The notes under the pieces: generated by a model | Seen by the model: only the letters and a program-made list of their open reading frames with translations | Database searches by the model: none | What the model was told of the DNA's origin: nothing | Part shown: positions 4,584 to 61,639 of the stretch, piece by piece | Position numbering within the stretch: the first letter of the stretch is position 1 | Layout: every line of letters starts with the position of its first letter | Translations under genes and position numbers: made by a program | Source: Octopus bimaculoides | Lineage: Eukaryota | Reading direction: 5' to 3' | NCBI RefSeq assembly: GCF_001194135.2 | Contig: NC_068990.1 | Span: forward strand, 1,700,991-1,764,897 | Length of the DNA stretch: 63,907 bases

Positions 4584-4957
4584 TATTCTTTTATTTGCTG
4601 TAGTAATCTTGACTGTGGCCATGCTGGAGCACTGGCTTTTTAGTCAAACAAATCAACCCCAGGACTTATTCTTTGTAAGCCTAGGACTTATTCTATCTGT
4701 CTCTTTTGCTGAACCACTTAGTTATGGGGACGTAAACACACCGACATTGGTTGTCAAGCGATGATGGTGGGACAAACATAAACACACACACACACATATG
4801 ATGGGCTTCTTTCAGTTTCTGTCTACCAAATCCACTCACAAGGCTTTGGTTAGCTCAAGGCTATAGTAGAAGACACTTGCCCAAGGTGCTGCACAGTGGG
4901 ACTGAACTTACAACCATGTGGTTGGGAAGCAAGTCATTTACCACACAGCCACTCCTG
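4584..4957 (-). mobile_element. tRNA-derived CORE-type SINE, family A (octopus OR-like)
   Basis: Reverse complement of head CAGGAGTGGCTGTGTGGTAA...GTTCAGTCCCACTG, CORE-like CCTTGGGCAAGTGTCTTCTACTATAGCC, TG hinge and tail ending CAGCATGGCCACAGTC. Confidence 0.85.
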
Positions 4958-25975: not shown

Positions 25976-26750
25976 TGGTGGTGGTGGTGGGCTTTTTATC
26001 ACACAGCCATGCCTGCACCCTGTATATATATATATATATATATATATATNNNNNNNNNNNNNNNNNNNNNNNNNNNNNNNNNNNNNNNNNNNNNNNNNNN
26101 NNNNNNNNNNNNNNNNNNNNNNNNNNNNNNNNNNNNNNNNNNNNNNNNNNNNNNNNNNNNNNNNNNNNNNNNNNNNNNNNNNNNNNNNNNNNNNNNNNNN
26201 NNNNNNNNNNNNNNNNNNNNNNNNNNNNNNNNNNNNNNNNNNNNNNNNNNNNNNNNNNNNNNNNNNNNNNNNNNNNNNNNNNNNNNNNNNNNNNNNNNNN
26301 NNNNNNNNNNNNNNNNNNNNNNNNNNNNNNNNNNNNNNNNNNNNNNNNNNNNNNNNNNNNNNNNNNNNNNNNNNNNNNNNNNNNNNNNNNNNNNNNNNNN
26401 NNNNNNNNNNNNNNNNNNNNNNNNNNNNNNNNNNNNNNNNNNNNNNNNNNNNNNNNNNNNNNNNNNNNNNNNNNNNNNNNNNNNNNNNNNNNNNNNNNNN
26501 NNNNNNNNNNNNNNNNNNNNNNNNNNNNNNNNNNNNNATCTATATATATACACACATACATATATATATACACACACATATATATCAATACTTGTTGGCC
26601 ACAGTTGGAATGTTTAATATTATATCTGCTTAATAAGGTGGCAAGTTGGCAGGGTCATTAGTGCTGCAGGTGCTTGGTGTTATTTCACCTGTCACTATGT
26701 TCTGAGTTCAAATTCTGTCGAAGTTGATTTTTGCCTTTCATCCTTTTGGA

Positions 26751-26942
26751 GTTGATTAAATAAGTACCAGTTATGCTTTGGGGTTGATTAAATAAGTACC
26801 AGTTACGCTTTGGGGTTGATTAAATAAGTACCAGTTACGCTTTGGGGTTGATTAAATAAGTACCAGTTACGCTTTGGGGTTGATTAAATAAGTACCAGTT
26901 ACGCTTTGGATTTGATTAAATAAGTACCAGTTACGCTTTGGA
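26751..26942 (+). repeat. 32-bp minisatellite x6 inside a family C repeat (host copy 26636-27000)
   Basis: GTTGATTAAATAAGTACCAGTTACGCTTTGGG units start at 26751, 26783, 26815, 26847, 26879 and 26911. Confidence 0.95.
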
Positions 26943-27388
26943 GTTGATGCAATCAACTTAATCACCTCTGCCAATCTGCCCTTGTGGCAAAAATTTGAAA
27001 TCAATATTATATTTGATTAATAAGAGTTGATCAGAAATGAACTGCAATAACAGTCACAAAAGCAACCACTGGGCAATAAGCAAAGTTGACATCAAAAGCA
27101 ACAACAACAATTATAATAATTACGTTAATTGAATACTAATTAGAATAGCAATGATAATTACAACAAAAGAAAACATGCCACCGACAAAAGCAACAACGTC
27201 AACAATTATGACATCAAGAACAAGAACAATAACAGTGTCAAGATACATCAACAGCAACAAAATGAACTACAGCAGCAACACTAACAATATTAATGATACC
27301 ATCACCAGCAACAAAACCAGTGACAGCTACATCAATTGTGTATTAATTAGTAGAAAAGAGATATGTAGTTGATATTAGCAAATAGTAA

Positions 27389-27745
27389 AGGAAACCAATA
27401 GACATCTTGTTATAAGTCTTCACAAATTGCAAGTTATCATGGAGAATTAATTCATTGATTTATCAGAGAAAGTTGTTGCTACTGAGATGTTTAGGATGTG
27501 AAACTATCATGGATTACCCAAATGGAATTGACATTAGTAATGCTGGAAATGTTTTAGTTGGAAGCAGTCATGGTAACTGCTTTCATTGGTTGCTAAACTA
27601 TAATCTGACACAGTTTCTTATAGCAGAATTTCAATGCTTTTACCTCAAAGTCAGCCATTGTTGTCTCATTATACCATATGAAGGTTACATAGTCATATTT
27701 ACTAAAAGTGACCAAAATGTATTTATTCTAGATGCTTCATACCTT
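27389..27745 (+). pseudogene. brat: Decayed fragment of a brain tumor (brat/ncl-1)-like TRIM-NHL gene, C-terminal NHL repeats
   Basis: LRCLGCETIMDYPNGIDISNAGNVLVGSSHGNCFH...LIAEFQCFYLKVSHCC-LIIPYEGYIVIFTKSDQNVFILDASY compares with remembered Brat [35 protein letters not shown]...[40 protein letters not shown]. Upstream RKPIDILL* resembles REPSDIA. There are in-frame stops upstream, a lost Gly codon and apparent compensating indels. Confidence 0.8.
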
Positions 27746-27767
27746 TTACTTGCTTTAGTTAAAAAAA

Positions 27768-27896
27768 CTGTGACCATGCTGGGGCACTGCCTTGAAGAAT
27801 TTTTAGTTGAATGAATCGACCCCAGTATTTATTTTTTAAAGCCTGATGCTTATTCTATTGGTCCCTTTTGCTGAACTATTAAGTTACAGGGATGTA

Positions 27897-27985
<89 letters not shown>

Positions 27986-28137
27986 CAGGGTTCCTTCATT
28001 TTTTTGTCTATCAAATGCACTCATAAGGCTTTAGTCAGCCTGATGTTGTAGTAGAAGACACTTGCCCAAGGTGCCACATAGTGGGACTGAACCCTGAACC
28101 ATGTAGTTGGGGAGCAAGCTTCTTACTACACAGCTAC
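27768..28137 (-). mobile_element. Family A CORE-type SINE with an expanded (CA)n hinge (27898-27982)
   Basis: Tail, ~85 bp CA tract, then GAAGACACTTGCCCAAGG and the head, all in reverse. Confidence 0.85.
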
Positions 28138-28463
28138 TAATAATTATTATAAATGTATGTTACTTTATATATTACAAAGATTTATAAACTTTTAAATCAG
28201 TTCAAATATGTTTGTAACATATTTGATCTGCATAAAGGCCACTATCACTGCAGTTTGCTATGGAGAAAATTTCTTGCTTTAGACAACAGGTGATAAAACA
28301 CTAACAAGCATTTCTGAGCACCCTTTGTGGACCAATGAATGCATTTCAAGCTTGTTAGCTACAAAGATTTATATTTCATTACTTTGTATCATTGATGCAG
28401 AAAAGTTCCTGGCTTTGGGTAAAAGAAAATAGAGGAGACTCAGTTAATTATGATTTTATTCAA

Positions 28464-29284
28464 CTCTCACTCAAGGTAAAAGGCAGACTGTATGACGCAT
28501 GTGTACGAATAGCCATGCTACATGGCAGTGAAACATGGGCTGTGACTGCTGAGGACATGCGTAAGCTTGCAAGGAATGAAGCCAGTATGCTCCGCTGGAT
28601 GTGTAATGTAAATGTGCATACCCGTCAGAGTGTAAGTATCTTGAGAGAAAAGCTGAACATAAGAAGCGTCAGTAGTGGTGTGCAAGAGAGACAATTGCGC
28701 TGGTTTGGACATGTGGTGAGAATGAATGAGGATAGCTGCGTGAAAAAGTGCCACTCCCTAACTGTTGAGGGAACCCGTGGAAGAAGTAGGCCCAGGAAGA
28801 CCTGGGCTGAGGTGGTGAGGCAAGACCNNNNNNNNNNNNNNNNNNNNNNNNNNNNNNNNNNNNNNNNNNNNNNNNNNNNNNNNNNNNNNNNNNNNNNNNN
28901 NNNNNNNNNNNNNNNNNNNNNNNNNNNNNNNNNNNNNNNNNNNNNNNNNNNNNNNNNNNNNNNNNNNNNNNNNNNNNNNNNNNNNNNNNNNNNNNNNNNN
29001 NNNNNNNNNNNNNNNNNNNNNNNNNNNNNNNNNNNNNNNNNNTGTAAGGTTTTCGAGCGAGATCGTTGCCAGTGCCCCTGGACTGGCTCTTGTGCGGGTG
29101 GCACATAAAAGACACCATTTCGAGCGTGGCCGTTTTCGTTAGGAAGGGCATCCAGCTGTAGAAACTCTGCCAAATTAGATTGGAGCCTGGTGTAGCCATG
29201 CGGTTGCACCAGTCCTCAGTCAAATCGTCCAACCCATGCTAGCATGGAAAGCGGACGTTAAACGATGATGATGATGGTGATGAT
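28464..29284 (+). mobile_element. 5'-truncated RTE LINE: end of ORF, 3' UTR and (GAT)n tail (gap inside)
   Basis: LKVKGRLYDACVRIAMLHGSETW...MLRWMC...LRWFGHVVRM...EGTRGRSRPRKTW are the standard RTE post-RT motifs. The tail ends AAACGATGATGAT. Confidence 0.93.
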
Positions 29285-32932: not shown

Positions 32933-33096
32933 GGTGCAGGAGTGGTTGTATGGTAAAAACTTGCTTCTCATCCGCATGGTTCCTGGTTCAGTTCCACTGC
33001 ATGGCACCTTGGGCAAGTGTCTTCTTCTATACCCTTGGGCCGACTGGAGCCTTGTGAGTGAATTTGGTAGACACAAACTGAAAGAAGCCTATTGTC

Positions 33097-33135
<39 letters not shown>

Positions 33136-33352
33136 TTGTGTGTCTGTGTTTGTTCCCCACCATTGCTTGATAACTGATGTTGGTGTGTTCGCATCTCTAT
33201 AACTTAGTGGTGTGGCAAAAGAGACTGATAGAATAAGTACTAGGCTTACAAAGAATAAGTCCTGGGGTCAATTTGCTTGACTAAAGGCGGTGCTCCAGCA
33301 TGGCCACAGTCAAATGACTGATATAAGTAAAAGAATAAAGGAATAAAAGAAT
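32933..33352 (+). mobile_element. Full-length family A CORE-type SINE
   Basis: GGTGCAGGAGTGGTTGTATGG head, GGTTCAGTTCC B-box-like, CCTTGGGCAAGT CORE-like block, (TA)n(TG)n hinge, tail ending (AAGAATAA)n. Confidence 0.88.
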
Positions 33353-33553
33353 ATATTTATATACATACGTACACACATACATACATACATACATACATAC
33401 ATACTTACATATATATATTTACACACACACACACCCATATATGGATCTATGAGTGTGTATATATAAATATATATACATATATGTGTGTAGATATATATGT
33501 ATATATATATACATATATGTATGTGTATTGTGTATATATATATTTATATATGC

Positions 33554-35238: not shown

Positions 35239-36529
35239 TCCGGTCATTAAGAATGAAATGTCCGATTTTGAACTGAAAGTTTATTTTGACTTATCTCAAC
35301 AAAGAGCAATGCAGTTAATCAAAGTATGCACCTAAATTATCAACACATGTTTGCCATTTTATCGGTAGCTTATTTTTGCCAGCACTGAAAAATTCTGGAG
35401 AGCAAGAAGTGATGAAATCATGAAAGGCTGTTTTTACATCTTCTTCAGATTTGAAATTTTTTCCTTGCAAAAAGTTGTCTAATGCCTGGAAAACATGTCA
35501 GTCAGTTGGTGCAAGGTTTGGTGAATATGGTGGATGACAGAGTACTTCTAAGATCAGTTCCTGTAACTTGAGTAGCGTTCTTTGTGCAATATGTGGTCAA
35601 GCATTGTCTTGCAAGAGAATCGGCCTGTTTCTATTGACCAATCTTAGTTGTTTAATTGCAAGTTCACTCATCATTTCACCTAATTGGCTGATGTATACAT
35701 CTATTGTAATTGACTTACCAGGTCTCATGAATCTGTAATAGATGACCCCACCCTGGGACCACCAAACAGACATCATTAGCTTCGTTTGGTGAATATTCTT
35801 GTTTGGATTGTATTTTGGCACTTTATCTCTATCCAACCACTGTGCACAATGCTTGCTATTGCTGAAAAGAATCCATTTTTCATCACATGTAACAATATGA
35901 TGCAGAAATAATTCACTTTTATTATGCTGTGACAGCAAAGAACAGCAAGTTTCAAGATGACATGTCATTTGATGCTCGTTTAGTTTGTGTGGCACCCACT
36001 TGTCCAGCTTCTTTACCATGCTGATTTGTTTCAGATGGTCCAATACAGTTGGAATCAAAACATCAAACCTTGCTGCTAACTCACATGTAGTTTGAGGTGT
36101 ATCCATTTCCATTACAGTTTCCAGCTCATCATTATCCACCTTGGTCTCAGGTCTATCATGGGTCTAATTTTCAAGAATAAAGTCACCAGACCAGAACTTC
36201 TCAAACCATTGTCATACAGTGTGCTTGCTCATCTGCCGCATTTTCACCAAACACCTCATTGATCTTTTGAGTTGTCTGGGATGCACTGGTTCCACAATGG
36301 AACTCATATTCATAAACAACACAAATTTTTTATCTATCCATGGGCTCACAAAAATTGATTTACAAGAGAAAACTCACAATTATAATCAGACACCGAACTG
36401 CATTTCGAAAAGTGATGATGTAATTCTTGAATGCTGTAAAACAAAGAATTGTCAGGATAAAACATTAGAGTCAACAACGTTCAAACTTGGTGCATAAGAA
36501 AACCGGATATTTCATTCTTAATGACATGA
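35239..36529 (-). mobile_element. Full-length (1291 bp) inactivated D,D34D mariner transposon
   Basis: TIRs TCCGGTCATTAAGAATGAAATGTCCGATTTT and the complement of TCATGTCATTAAGAATGAAATATCCGGTTTT, each flanked by TA. The transposase has WVPHKL, TCDEKW, QDNA*PH and YSPNLAPTD with 34-residue D-D spacing; it contains stops and frameshifts. Confidence 0.95.
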
Positions 36530-37109: not shown

Positions 37110-37354
37110 CCGCTAAGTTACGGGGACATAAACACATAAACATTGTTTGGCAAGCGATGGTAGGGAGACAAACACAGGCACACACACACATGATAGGCTT
37201 CTTTCAGTTTCTGTCTACCAAATCCACTGACAAGATTTTGGTCGGACCAAGGCTATAGTAGAAGACACTTGCCCTAGGTGCCATACAATGGTACTGAACC
37301 CGGGACCATGTGTTTGGTAAGCAAGCTACTTACCACACAGCCACTCCTGTGCCT
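37110..37354 (-). mobile_element. Family A CORE-type SINE, tail truncated
   Basis: Reverse copy of head, CORE and part of the tail. Confidence 0.85.
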
Positions 37355-52959: not shown

Positions 52960-55011
52960 AATAATGGACAGTCAAGTTTGGTGAATTAGCAGAAATGGTT
53001 AAGTGTCAGACTGAGAATTCGAAGCGAATTAATTGTATTCAAGCCACAGGCAAAGCACCTGTTACTCGTTCCTCACTTGCTTTTCCAATAATGGCTTCAG
53101 CGAAGAGTTGCATAAACTTGTGAGAAAGTGGAATGTTCTTTCTGGAAATGGAACCATCCATTGAATAACGTTTGGTCGTTTGATCTAGTTTATGTTGCAT
53201 GTTGTCATTGTGTAGGTGTTATACCCTCCCAGGTCAATTTTAAATGAGTAAACTAATATATACAACCATTCCATTTGTGATTCATCCTGTCTACTTTGCT
53301 TATCTATGACAGCCATTCTTAAATGGTGAACCATGGTACTGTGGTGTACCACAAGTACCACAGGTACTCTGTGGAATTTTTAAAATATAATTTAAGGCTT
53401 TAGAAAATAATTTATGCTTGCTTCGGCATCTTTACCATTTATCTTTTACTTGTTTCAGTTATTAGGCTGTGGCCATACTGGGGCACCGCATTGAAGAAAT
53501 TTTGTTATCGAATTGACCCCAGTATTTATTTTTTTTTTAAGGAGAGATACTTATTTTATTGGTGACTTTTGCTGAACTGCTAAGTGATGGGGACACAAAC
53601 ATACCTGCACTGGTTGTTAAGCAATAGTGATGGACACACAGACACAAACATGCACACACACACGCACACACGCACACACACACACACACACACACACGTA
53701 CACACACATGTACGTACATGCACACACACACACACACAAACGTACACAGACGCTCACACACACACACACACACATGCACACGAGTTAAAGGAAGAGGTAA
53801 AAAAAATGAAGGCAGAACAAGCTTATCAGATCATTGAAGTTATTTTAATTATTATAATGGTGAATGGAAGTAAGCAAAAGTAAATAATAATGTCTTGCAT
53901 CTCTTTCGGGGATATCTCAGATAATGGTTCGATGTGTTGATCCACATTTCCATATACTGGGTATTCTGTCATTGGAGACAAGGTGTACATGCAGGAAATG
54001 TCTATGTAGAGATGTGGATAGAAAGTTTGATGTAGAGGAAAATATGAAGACCAAGGCTCATAGTTCATCCTGACTCTTGACTCCGCTCCCATTATTTGCA
54101 TGAGCATTAAGCTGCTAGATCCCATTTTATCAACTGGATGCATTCCTCAATCTGCTTTCTGAACTATGGACTTACCTGGGATTATTGATAAGGAGGTACA
54201 CCTTCATGGAAATATGTGTCAACCCATACTCTCTAGAAGAGATGGTTAGGTGTGATTTTAGGGAGACTTACTTAGTTCTTCTTACAAGTTAAATAATCTC
54301 TTAATGGCCTTTTCATTAGCTCACTGATTTAGATTACATGCTTTCAAGTAGGTTCTCTGTAAGCTAAAGTTTCATCATATTTTTGTAGTATCAGTTTGTA
54401 GGAGGTGATTTGGAACTTAACACAAGATTTGTTCTTTTGAGAATTGAAACTGAATGACCTAAGGTATGTTGAGCAGCTTTGCTTTTGCTTGGTTTCCTAT
54501 AATATTTGATTTAACTGCAGTAGTAACATGGGGTTTTCTGCATGTAGGCAAATTAGCACAGTTATTAGAGCATGTGACAAAGCACATTGCAGCATTTACT
54601 TCAGCGCCTTGTATTCTGATTTCAAATTCCCCTGAGATCAACTGTGGTCTTTATCTTCCAGGATCAATGAATAAAATGCCAGCCTAGAGTAGTGAACTCT
54701 TAGAATCATTTGAGGATTGGATAGGTTGCATTGCTTTACTTCTAGCTTTTTGCTTTCTGAGTTCAAATCCAACTTACATGGATAGTAATTGAATTTTTGC
54801 CTGGGTTACCCTACCACCATGTATTATTACCACAACCAACAAGGGTATTTTTATCAGAGTTCACTTTGTAGCAAGCATTTGGGCCAGGTCTCCAGTTTAA
54901 TATACCTTCTTCTGTTCATCCCGCCTGTACCAAAGGCCCTCTAGAAGGTCATGGACACTTCCCTCCTCCTTGCCAAGTGATAAAGAAAATGCGATTTTTC
55001 ATTACGTGGAT

Positions 55012-56169: not shown

Positions 56170-56590
56170 TTGGGTCATACCATAAATAATGCACTTTTTC
56201 AATTGCATGAAATAAAAGTCGGAGGGGGACAGGATAAACTACCTGCATCAACATGCTGTGAAAGCAGGTAGTAATTTTACCTTGCATTTATTCGTAGTGC
56301 AAGTTTTTTGAAGAGTCCAGTTCGATTTTAACAGTTATTTTTTCAAAGCTATAATGGAAGTGACAAAGGAGCATATGCAGCACATTTTGCTTTATGAGTT
56401 AAATAAAGGCAACAACACAATGGAAAATGTGAAGAATATTAATGCAGTGTATGGGGATCTGTTTGGTGGGATATGAAAGGTTTAGTCCACTCTGAACTTT
56501 TAAACCCAGACCAAATGATAACAAAGGAGATATACTGCAAGCAGCTTGGGTGGCTTAAATCTGCACTAGAATGAAAACGAGCATCATTGT
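56170..56590 (+). mobile_element. Internally deleted mariner fragment
   Basis: TA-TTGGGTCATACCATAAATAATG end. ATG 56354 gives MEVTKEHMQHILLYELNKGNN...INAVYGD, fused directly to VWWDMKGLVHSELLNPDQMITKEIYCKQL; the region between is deleted. Confidence 0.85.
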
Positions 56591-59500
56591 TTTTGCAATA
56601 CTGCATTTTTGGCGGTAGTATGTTTCATCGAATAGGAAGAACTCTTAGAGATTCAATGACAAAAGTCTGTTTATGCAGTCCCGAGGTATTTTTCTAACCA
56701 GAATTTTATTGCCACTATCCTGTAGTCATGTGGAACGTTGGTGTAGAGGTTGATGACATTGAAGGAGACTAATAGTGCTCCTTCAAGAAGAAGAAGAAGA
56801 TGATGATGATGATGATGATGATGATGATCATGATGACGATGAAGAATTAACTGAGTTGTTTGACACTGGACTGAATGCTTTGCAGTGTTCTGGCTCTCTG
56901 TATTCTTAATTCAAATGCCGTCAAGGTCAACTTTACCTATCATCCTTTTGAGAGTTGATAAAAAAGAAAGAACCAGCTCAGAGTTGGGTACGGTTCCTTG
57001 CAGTATATCCTGGTTCCTTGCATTCTGATAGGAATATCTGCAACAATGCTGGTGCAAAGCTGTGTGCACTTGAGTTGGTGACCTTTCATCATGGACAGAC
57101 ATGGATTATGCAAAGAAGGGTAGGTGCTTTGGTTCCATTTTGTTAGCCTTCAGATCAGTAGCTATATTTGGATGTAAGTGTATAAATGTCAGTGAAAGAA
57201 TTCCAGTTAGAATTTGTTGCTGTTGTTGTATTTGTTACGGATCAGCAGGTTTATCTTTTTCAAATATTCATTCAATTGTGTTAGATTTATTCTATTTTGT
57301 TTTTGTGACATTGTATTATTACACATGTACTCAACCCAAGCTCTCATATTTCCATTACTGCTTCATTAAGTTCCTTCAGAGAAATTCCCCCAACAAAATA
57401 TTTTATAATGATGGCCTTTTGCCTATATTTTGTTCCTTCTGTTCGATCCTATTGGTAGATATGACATGCAATACTGACATTTCATATTTTATTCTCCCAT
57501 ACCACATTTTAAATAATCATCTTCAGAATTCACTATTGTATAGTTTATAACACATGTATAAGCAACAGTAATTTCGCAAAACATTATTATAACTAAATGA
57601 TTAAGATACATGTATAATTTGCTCAACTAAAATTCAAGAATTCTGGTTTAATTTTTAATTGTATGATACTTTTGCTTTAAATATAATCATTTAAATATAA
57701 TTGCATCACTGTTACTCTTTAAACACATTACTAATAAGTCATAATTTACATATCTTCATTATCTCTCAAAAAATTCTAAGTATCATTATTTTCCTGGCAT
57801 ACAGTAAATAATTCTCTAGACACATTGATTTGTATATTTATTCTTCATATGTTCCAGTAGATTCAAAGACAAATATGCTAGATGTGTCTTCATAACATGT
57901 TTCATTGGTGCAAGGGATTCAAAAACACTCGAGTTTTGACATGTGATTTGTCGTCCAAAAACACCTTAGATATTTGAGCTTAAACAAATGACTGGCTTTG
58001 TTTATAATTTCAGTGAACGAAAATGTTTGCTGATCAGTGCTTATACATGCCAACGGATAAAAAAATCGTTATTTGCACTTTTAATAAGATTAAGTTATAC
58101 CACATTCTTCGAAATCATTGTTATTACTTTTACTAATTTTCTGTTTTTATAAGATAACATTACTTCTAATATGTTTTACTTCGTAATTGCAATGGTTTTT
58201 CACATGAAGTTTTTTAAAAAAAGATAACGCTTCCCTCTCTCTATGTATCTGGTATACTTGGATATTGTTTACTGAGTAACTTAATTACATATTTCTCAGA
58301 ATCTATATATTCAGAATTCTTGTGGTACATTTTTGTCATTATCTGTTGTTCATACGATGAAGCAATAGATTTTGGCTGCAATAAAAACACATCATACTCT
58401 ACTTTTTTTGATAATTAGAATTGGATGGGTTTTTGTTTTGTGTTCTTGTATATATAAATGTCAGATGAACTTTATCTGTGTTTCAGAATACATCTCTTGT
58501 TAGACAGTGTTGCACTGAATCTGATAAAAGTCAATGATTACATTAATAACATAAGAATCTAAGAAATACTCAGTGACTTACACTATAAGTCAGTGTGGAA
58601 GTAGTTCCTTTGCTTAGGCAACTAGAAGACTCTCTGAGGAAATTGATAATCAAACAATCATCAATCAACCAATCAATCAATATACAGAGGGCAGCCACAT
58701 TAGAGTTATCATAAGCAATTTTTAAAATGCTTCATACATTGCTTCTATCTCGAACAGAGGTTTTCTAATGGACTAGTTTCCTAGTTACAAAATCAGTGAT
58801 TGTATAGCACTGTGTTTTCTATATATTGCAAGCAAGGTAAACCGCTACCATACCTGACAACAAGTACCTACCACCGAGGAGATCCAATACAAATCAAAAC
58901 CATGAGTTCAGGTCTTGAAGCTAGGGTGGCAGGCGTTATCTGCCACTTGCAATAACTATTGGGTGTGAGAAGCACACTAAATAAACCAGCTAGAGGAGAC
59001 GTCATCCTGGGGTTAAATAGCAGTAGTGTTGTCTCTTTAAGGACAGCCACATTAAAGTGGCCATAAGTAATATATATATATGGATATATATATACACACA
59101 CCTAAAAACATACGCATAAATTCATGTGGACGTACATATACATACATGCATGCATACAGAAACACAAATCTATACACAGCATACACACAAACACATACAA
59201 ACATTAATAGGCACACATATATATATATATGCACACAGATACATGTAATGTGAATAAATGAAGATGGTGGTTCCAGAGTTATAAGAGAAATGCCGATGAA
59301 GATAACTCATATATGAAAACTCATTTAATTATGTCACAAAGAATATGTCAATCACATTGAATCCAAACAGTACTAGTAGTTCAAAAGTATAAATCAGTAT
59401 AAAAATAACAGATATGAGAACAGTGTGTACTGAAATAGTACTAGAAACGAATGCTTATATACAGAGTTATGGTATTGCTTAACCATGAAAATAGATAAAA

Positions 59501-60497: not shown

Positions 60498-61639
60498 TTA
60501 ATAAAGAGAAAGTTCTCGGTACAGTATTATATATATTTGAAAGAATGAGTAGAAATAGTTCTTTTGAAGGGATCATTTTTGTAAACATTATTATTAAGAT
60601 TAAAATAAAAATTATCCCCTCAAAAAAGGCATCTCTACTAATTTTTTCAAACACACACACACACACACACACTCACACACACAGACACACACACACACAC
60701 ACACATATATACAAGCAGAAGGAACAAGTTTCACTTGGGTTATAAACTTAACACTTTGCTTGTAGTGTAATTTGAGACCTTCCTTCTAGGCATGGTTAAA
60801 TAAATATTTTGCAAATCACCCGTTCGTACATTGGTGTGAAATAATTTTTTTCCACAAGATATTGTGAGTATATTCAATGTATCTGACCTCCAAACCTGAT
60901 GCAAACCACATTTTTCTGAAAAAGAAAGAGGAGGACCTCGGAGTTTTGTTTGGGAGGTTTTTGTTTTTCTTTACCGGGTTATTTTGCATATTTTCAACGA
61001 ATGTGACATTGAAATCACATATAAATGGCTCCTTTCCCCAGAAAAGGAAAGATTTGGCTTCTAAAGGACCCACCAATATTTTGCTGTGAAATAATTTTCG
61101 ACCCCTCCCCACTTTTCTTTTCTAGGAAATAACTGGCTTGCAGTGGGTTTGGAGGTCATGTACGTTCAATGCACTTGAAAAACATGAGGAAAAAAATTAT
61201 TTTACACCGAGGTATGAACAGATCATTTATGAAATATCTACCCATGGTTATTTACTGATGCACAAATACACCAGTACAGGGATTTTGTTTGACCCTTCAG
61301 CCTTTCTAACATTTTGTTTATGTGTTTGTGATACAGAAGATTGTGAACACTGAAAATAATGGCAATAACTTTTTTCTTGCCAGACATCATTACAACGGTA
61401 AATGCTAGACAGAATGGTTGACAAAATAAAGAGAATGATAGAGATGTGACGTCGTTGTCATCGTCATATAAAATATCCTTTATTATCTTGTATGTGACAA
61501 ATGTGCAAACAGGTACACATTCACAGACGCATACACACTCATACAAAATGTGACATCATCATCGTTATCATGGTATAAAATGTTCGTTACTATAATTAAC
61601 TATAGAAAATTTATTTCTGAGAAAATGTTATAATGTTTC

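Follow-up and report, generated by a model that had tools for sequence, protein, structure and literature searches.

The window, by which we mean the whole stretch of 63,907 nucleotides analysed here, contains one segment that encodes the end of an NHL domain. This segment is probably a non-functional, exon-sized relic, left either by partial duplication at the DNA level or by a dead paralogue of which no other exon is recognisable. The earlier note on this DNA had described it as a C-terminal piece of a TRIM-NHL gene, strongly diverged at almost invariant residues, and that description holds.

An open frame joins the NHL segment to a repeat

The + strand frame of position 27299, translated as LGCETIMDYPNGIDISNAGNVLVGSSHGNCFHWLLNYNLTQFLIAEFQCFYLKVSHCCLIIPYEGYIVIFTKSDQNVFILDAS, stays open between 27416 and the stop codon at 27812–27814. 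Stops in the same frame lie upstream of the ORF at 27413–27415 and 27383–27388. The following features were defined along this frame.

27455–27814, + strand: ORF of 119 codons from the mechanical listing, a chimera of exon relic and repeat read-through
27455–27739, + strand: supported homology to a Mei-P26-type TRIM-NHL terminal coding exon, in a single open frame
27740–28138, no strand assigned: SINE-like interspersed repeat, delimited by alignment with other copies in the window

The homologous segment covers the last strand of blade 4 together with blades 5 and 6 of the six-bladed, RNA-binding NHL beta-propeller. The peptides from which an NHL-domain gene had first been recognised, YPNGIDISNAGNVLVGSSHGN, EFQCFYLKVSHCC and EGYIV, are present in the 27455–27814 ORF. 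A 51-nt stretch within the relic (27573–27623, + strand) starts with GTAACT and ends with TTTCTTATAG, and its excision would keep the frame; this splice-like arrangement is probably a coincidence.

The segment resembles Mei-P26 more closely than Brat

phmmer was used to compare the translated segment with all PDB chains. The top match was the NHL domain of Drosophila Mei-P26 (PDB 7NYQ; E = 2.2e-19, 73 bits), with query positions 17–109 aligned to residues 207–299 of 301. Brat (1Q7F, 4ZLR, 5EX7) gave a much weaker match with a fragmented alignment (E = 1.8e-8, 38 bits), followed by C. elegans NHL-2 (8SUC; E = 2.7e-6, 31 bits), and no LIN-41, TRIM71 or TRIM2/3 chain appeared among all PDB chains at E values up to 10. 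An exhaustive phmmer search of 1.84 billion representative proteins returned 156 matches, the best of them 53–55% identical, and all 156 lie at the extreme C-terminus and stop two residues short of the protein end. The top named match is a 922-residue 'protein meiotic P26-like' of the gastropod Babylonia areolata (XP_076446481.1, here P0003), which has RING, B-box and NHL-repeat domains; other top matches carry the automatic labels 'ncl-1' or 'Brain tumor'. A last-exon profile HMM built from 117 homologues matched the six-frame translated window with E = 2.2e-25 over profile positions 6–99 of 101, starting at about 27461. These E values reject chance similarity and establish that the NHL peptide match reported earlier is real.

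Mei-P26/NHL2 and Brat/NCL1 are distinct sister subfamilies (PMC5908797). The bit score against Brat is about half that against Mei-P26 (38 versus 73), which led to rejection of a Brat/NCL-1 orthologue, and sequence comparison places the source of the fragment in a TRIM-NHL gene of the Mei-P26/NHL2 subfamily and not in Brat proper. The original assignment to the Brat/NCL-1 family thus stands at the level of the TRIM-NHL branch and fold, which Brat and NCL-1 share, but fails at the level of the subfamily. The fragment has the same blade 5–6 motifs as Mei-P26 (7NYQ, P0003), namely PNGIDIS, SHGN.FH, EF.C, KVS.CC and EGY.V, and is colinear with it to within two residues of the protein C-terminus. 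It differs from Mei-P26 and P0003 in comprising only about 100 of some 920 residues at 49–53% identity, in having no RING, B-box, coiled coil or blades 1–4, and in having its native end replaced by a repeat.

The segment begins at a conserved exon boundary

Thirteen coding exons of the Babylonia gene (locus L001) were mapped. The last intron is in phase 0 between ...EYFVCDFK and GHCVVVFNEDG..., and the last exon encodes residues 821–922, which form blades 5 and 6 together with the closing strand of blade 4. The same break, after ...Q and before GHC..., occurs in five further genomic ORF matches (P0001/P0151, P0014, P0017, P0023 and P0119), and the last intron is therefore widely conserved. The window match to the last-exon profile begins at profile position 6 of 101, the fragment corresponds approximately to residues 825–918 of P0003, and by alignment its start coincides with the conserved last-exon boundary. 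Two features lie upstream of the supported homology.

27441–27454, + strand: predicted first five exon codons, G-H-C-V-V, from frameshift-aware alignment and the Babylonia L001 boundary
27389–27440, + strand: upstream extension of the earlier note, RKPIDILL followed by TAA at 27413–27415; flanking DNA with chance-level similarity

The GHCVV strand is recognisable only via a +2 frameshift at about 27447–27453, in a reading where GGA at 27441 encodes the Gly. Position 27441 is not directly preceded by an intact AG acceptor, and in-frame AG acceptors are present at 27432–27433 and 27465–27466.

The left edge had previously been set at about 27389, with the stops upstream counted as decay. RKPIDILL (27389–27412) was compared with REPSDIAV by frameshift-tolerant alignment. 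When the alignment was anchored inside the exon, 0–5 of 100 shuffles scored as well, and when it was anchored at the exon boundary, 20–72 of 300 shuffles (7–24%) did so. Neither the preceding exon nor residues 700–821, searched as profile HMMs, had a match on either strand of the window. Boundary-anchored shuffles that score as well and blank upstream-exon HMMs led us to reject 27389–27440 as part of the relic. With five full-length homologues as tblastn queries, 27455–27748 was the sole matching segment of the window, and the N-terminal 800 residues of P0003 had no tblastn match at a meaningful E in the window, in which 5839 N, like sequence beyond it, could conceal exons. Because supported homology starts at 27455–27461, the upstream stops fall outside demonstrable homology, and the edge at 27389 is not upheld.

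A SINE-like repeat replaces the native C-terminus

NHL homology stops at 27739 (...ILDAS versus ...VLNTL), three codons before the parental stop, and the native C-terminus and stop codon are absent. The repeat takes the place of the last three codons of the exon and its stop. Its boundary at 27740 is shown by copies at 53440 (+), 23484 (−) and 17317 (−), which begin matching exactly at the equivalent position, and the SINE expected downstream is thereby confirmed as a repeated SINE-like element. The element holds an internal (CA)n run at 27898–27982. The tail of the ORF (27740–27814) reads YLLLALVKKTVTMLGHCLEEFLVE and then a stop, and consists of 25 repeat-encoded codons. Neither ARAGORN (tRNA) nor Rfam found anything in or near the repeat.

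A short A-run had been taken as the end of the fragment. This run (27761–27767) lies inside the repeat, at a place where other copies have ATTTGA or ATTAGG, and it is not a poly(A) tail because it is internal to an element that starts at 27740. It also stands only 10 nt beyond the expected stop position, and there is no 3' UTR and no poly(A) tail.

The SINE-like family is abundant in the window in both orientations, mostly adjoins runs of (CA)n or (TA)n, and has left and right halves that are also found separately. Further copies lie at approximately 4588–4953, 17075–17317, 23403–23484, 32941–33358, 37256–37345, 38076–38492, 45017–45264, 48691–48785 and 53440–53711. A target-site duplication had been proposed as a check on the origin of the fragment. 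No direct repeat brackets the fragment, and a duplication would probably be unrecognisable at such divergence; the one candidate, 28144–28160 against 27723–27739, agrees at 11 of 17 positions, which is chance level in AT-rich DNA. Past the repeat, 28160–28177 (+), with the codons TTA CTT TAT ATA TTA CAA, translates as L L Y I L Q and resembles the missing parental T L Y I V stop, again at chance level in AT-rich DNA.

Conserved residues and the Pfam signature are lost

The fragment and the gastropod last exon are 48–49% identical in amino acids and 58% identical in nucleotides, and BLASTN against the Babylonia last exon gives 70% identity over 172 nt. Intact orthologues from insects, spiders, rotifers and molluscs share 77–91% identity over the whole NHL domain. 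An exon of a true orthologue was rejected on this comparison, about 49% identity against the 77–91% kept among orthologues across phyla.

Divergence extends to positions that seldom change. Among columns at least 95% conserved in the 117 homologues, the fragment keeps 14 of 20 and loses six, whereas the most diverged real homologues keep 17–21 of 21, apart from one that keeps only 14. Among the losses, Asp has become Ser in GDSHGN, Arg is gone from GNRFH and Gly from CCGL, and the LAKNNHH motif is missing; the GDSHGN and CCGL changes had been noticed before, and both are seen in the alignments. The retention ratio differs little between conservation classes, the pattern that unconstrained change would give. 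The Pfam NHL repeat (PF01436) has no match in the fragment at E values up to 10, and the intact P0003 exon scores 22.9 bits against a Pfam NHL cut-off of 20. These comparisons show that conserved residues and the Pfam signature are gone. Two length differences were located in alignments.

27587–27589, + strand: extra codon relative to all homologues, W in FHWLLNY
27662–27667, + strand: position of the absent Gly codon; homologues have RCCGL, this segment HCC-L

The extra W can also be read as two compensating insertions, +2 near 27587 and +1 near 27596 (FH[tg]VAK[c]YN), which together restore V-A and the frame; this reading and a simple insertion of one codon have similar scores. The assembled sequence of the window contains no complete six-bladed NHL domain, RING, B-box or coiled coil beyond the segment from the end of blade 4 to blade 6. 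The fragment is likely a pseudogene. With approximately two of six blades it cannot form an NHL propeller, and it most likely does nothing.

Weak signs of possible past constraint

The 97 homologous codons contain no stop and differ in length only by whole codons. Neutral change was simulated with AT-biased substitution starting from two parent-like exons. About 0.25–0.35 substitutions per site were needed to reach 47–60% identity, and only 5–10% of runs stayed stop-free over 97 codons. The mean BLOSUM62 score of the mismatches is −0.22 for the fragment and −0.70 ± 0.25 in the simulations (P about 0.02–0.03), a signal that is inflated by using the gastropod in place of the true parent and that falls to P ~0.1 after a rough correction. 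Both the stop-free and the BLOSUM62 figures carry ascertainment bias, and these signs of constraint are weakened because the region was chosen for its open frame. They suggest that part of the divergence arose in a functional, fast-evolving paralogue before its death; that the exon is still read is less likely.

A set of Drosophila proteins shows comparable divergence. Paralogues of the obscura group (GL17617, GL16630, GL21455 and others; D. obscura 'ncl-1-like') are 48–65% identical, like the fragment, but keep a whole NHL domain of 277–379 residues where the fragment has one exon's worth, and P0215 and P0109 keep 19 of 21 near-invariant residues. D. persimilis and D. obscura have many such short, diverged, Mei-P26-like, NHL-only paralogues (P0024, P0109, P0203, P0215, P0260 and P0184), which look like a lineage-specific expansion.

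Surroundings of the segment

The segment had been placed inside the intron of a ciliary gene, of which the window yields a sole trace.

14916–15056, + strand: putative CFAP65-like ORF, VYLKPTCIGTKSEALYSFKNVTS, 47 codons, with sub-threshold top matches in Pfam and PDB

These matches are to Pfam Ig_CFAP65_7th (E = 0.086) and to residues 801–834 of PDB CFAP65 9ijj_h (E = 0.41), and a homology search with the ORF returned nothing. The ORF lies 12 kb upstream of the fragment, and these similarities make it a possible exon of a ciliary gene like CFAP65. No host-gene exon was found downstream of the fragment within the window. Concatenated + strand ORFs of at least 50 codons had no PDB match, and concatenated ORFs of at least 25 codons had only a mariner match in Pfam, in a scan whose concatenation costs sensitivity. 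The intronic placement was thus not borne out by these searches; a position in an intron on the same strand as a ciliary gene is plausible.

The neighbourhood is rich in repeats and transposon remnants. Directly upstream of the relic, a 32-bp tandem repeat (26745–26948; 6.4 copies, 97% match) gives way to A/C-rich low-complexity DNA, which extends to about 27370. Mariner-type transposase remnants lie at 35597–36139 (−) and 56312–56600 (+), with PF01359 at E = 2.6e-23, Mos1-type HTH_48 at E = 4.6e-7 and a partial DDE match in the concatenated scan. The ORFs at 28392–29108 (+) and 43216–43977 (−), RQLRWFGHVVRM, look by eye like C-terminal regions of non-LTR retrotransposon proteins and have no Pfam match; the former is on the strand of the relic, 250 bp past the SINE-like repeat. 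Two other ORFs, 13768–14205 (+) and 60743–60970 (−), share an MPRRKVSN… start and a C-x2-C…CC motif without a Pfam match, and we presume from this motif a likeness to Helitron-type proteins. Many assembly gaps account for the N in the window, for example at about 15.7–16.6, 19.1–19.6, 21.2–21.7, 22.3–22.8 and 26.05–26.54 kb.

Origin of the segment

We infer both a DNA-level origin and a loss of function. The ancestor of the sequence from about 27441 to 27739 would be the terminal coding exon of a TRIM-NHL gene in the Mei-P26/NHL2 subfamily, copied at the DNA level either by partial duplication or as the last recognisable piece of a duplicated and diverged paralogue. The SINE-like repeat would have inserted later, three codons before the stop, and the frame would since have run into the repeat. 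This reading presupposes that the conserved last intron has the same position in the source genome's intact gene. In a DNA-level copy, protein homology is confined to the exon and the intron flanks have decayed past recognition; decayed, stand-alone copies of exons are frequent in large animal genomes that are rich in repeats. A DNA-level copy is favoured here because homology is found only within the exon, because random truncation near a junction would be a coincidence of about 7%, and because there is no 3' UTR or A-tail.

No second copy of the fragment was found in the window by repeat comparison, tblastn or HMMs, and exact look-ups of two products together with homology searches found no close or identical ORF in protein collections, transcriptome assemblies included. 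The suggestion that NHL modules are being copied around this genome is not supported, given a single copy in the window and no close relative in protein collections. A parent was sought and rejected among the top matches and their 90% clusters (gastropod, arthropod, flatworm, metagenome and Logan). None of the top matches is the parent, because their contigs lack the window repeats and third-codon identity between the fragment and their loci is 36–40%.

The mode of copying was weighed against two others. A 5'-truncated retrocopy, as the earlier note had proposed, would here be a processed copy of a Mei-P26-like mRNA truncated at, or decayed back to, the last junction, and we consider it quite unlikely. 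RKPIDILL lies roughly where REPSDIAV of the preceding exon would fall, the exon-anchored alignment reaches it with few shuffles scoring as well, and ORFs that resemble non-LTR retrotransposons by eye lie nearby. Like a processed pseudogene, the fragment is a truncated, diverged, promoter-less coding copy in non-coding DNA. Unlike one, it starts at the start of the last exon, spans no parental exon junction (the intron position in the source genome being deduced) and has no poly(A) tail, its A-run lying within the SINE-like repeat 10 nt past the expected stop. The upstream extension is matched by 7–24% of shuffles once it is anchored at the boundary, the upstream profile HMMs are blank, no target-site duplication is convincing, and by our own estimate random truncation would fall within ~10 nt of one of ~12 junctions in only ~7% of cases. 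Cargo of a mobile element, for instance a Helitron-type or Pack-type capture present as one of several genome copies, appears very unlikely. Its surroundings would suit such an origin, being very repeat-dense, with the tandem repeat, low-complexity DNA and SINE-like element flanking the fragment and Helitron-like and mariner remnants in the window; yet the fragment is single-copy there, its immediate left flank is unique, only weak inverted matches of 10–19 nt stand in place of bracketing terminal repeats, and no close paralogous ORFs are found in protein collections.

Loss of function was weighed against continued use. The segment could be the live terminal exon of a fast-evolving, lineage-specific Mei-P26-like paralogue, the rest of whose exons would fall in assembly gaps or beyond the window, or be exonised in the surrounding gene, in both cases with a repeat-derived C-terminus. 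The frame is stop-free, an outcome with the low neutral probability given above, and its length differences all come in whole codons; replacements are milder than under neutrality, acceptor-like AGs lie in frame near the expected exon start, and the obscura-group paralogues at 48–65% identity show that persistence in a short, diverged form is possible. We nevertheless consider a live exon unlikely. No upstream exon is detectable over 27 kb, and the segment has lost six residues that hardly vary among homologues, along with Pfam's NHL signature and its native C-terminus. The AG at the ancestral exon start is missing and the GHCVV strand is frame-shifted, no matching ORF or protein occurs in collections that include transcriptome assemblies, and the region had been selected for its open frame. 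In its specific form, with the exon belonging to a lineage-specific Mei-P26-like paralogue or exonised in a possibly CFAP65-like gene and the C-terminus rebuilt from the SINE-like repeat, we hold it to be improbable. A live exon of this kind would mean an NHL module that had been cut short or reshaped and had taken on a new role.

Implications

The fragment itself matters little, and nothing suggests a function for it. The useful outcome lies in the corrections: the segment is of Mei-P26 type and not Brat, it corresponds to one conserved exon, which leaves the retrocopy idea unsupported, and the apparent poly(A) lies inside a SINE-like repeat. If the constraint is real, the segment would record a rapidly evolving paralogue, specific to its lineage, of a protein that regulates translation in the germline and in stem cells, which would be moderately interesting.
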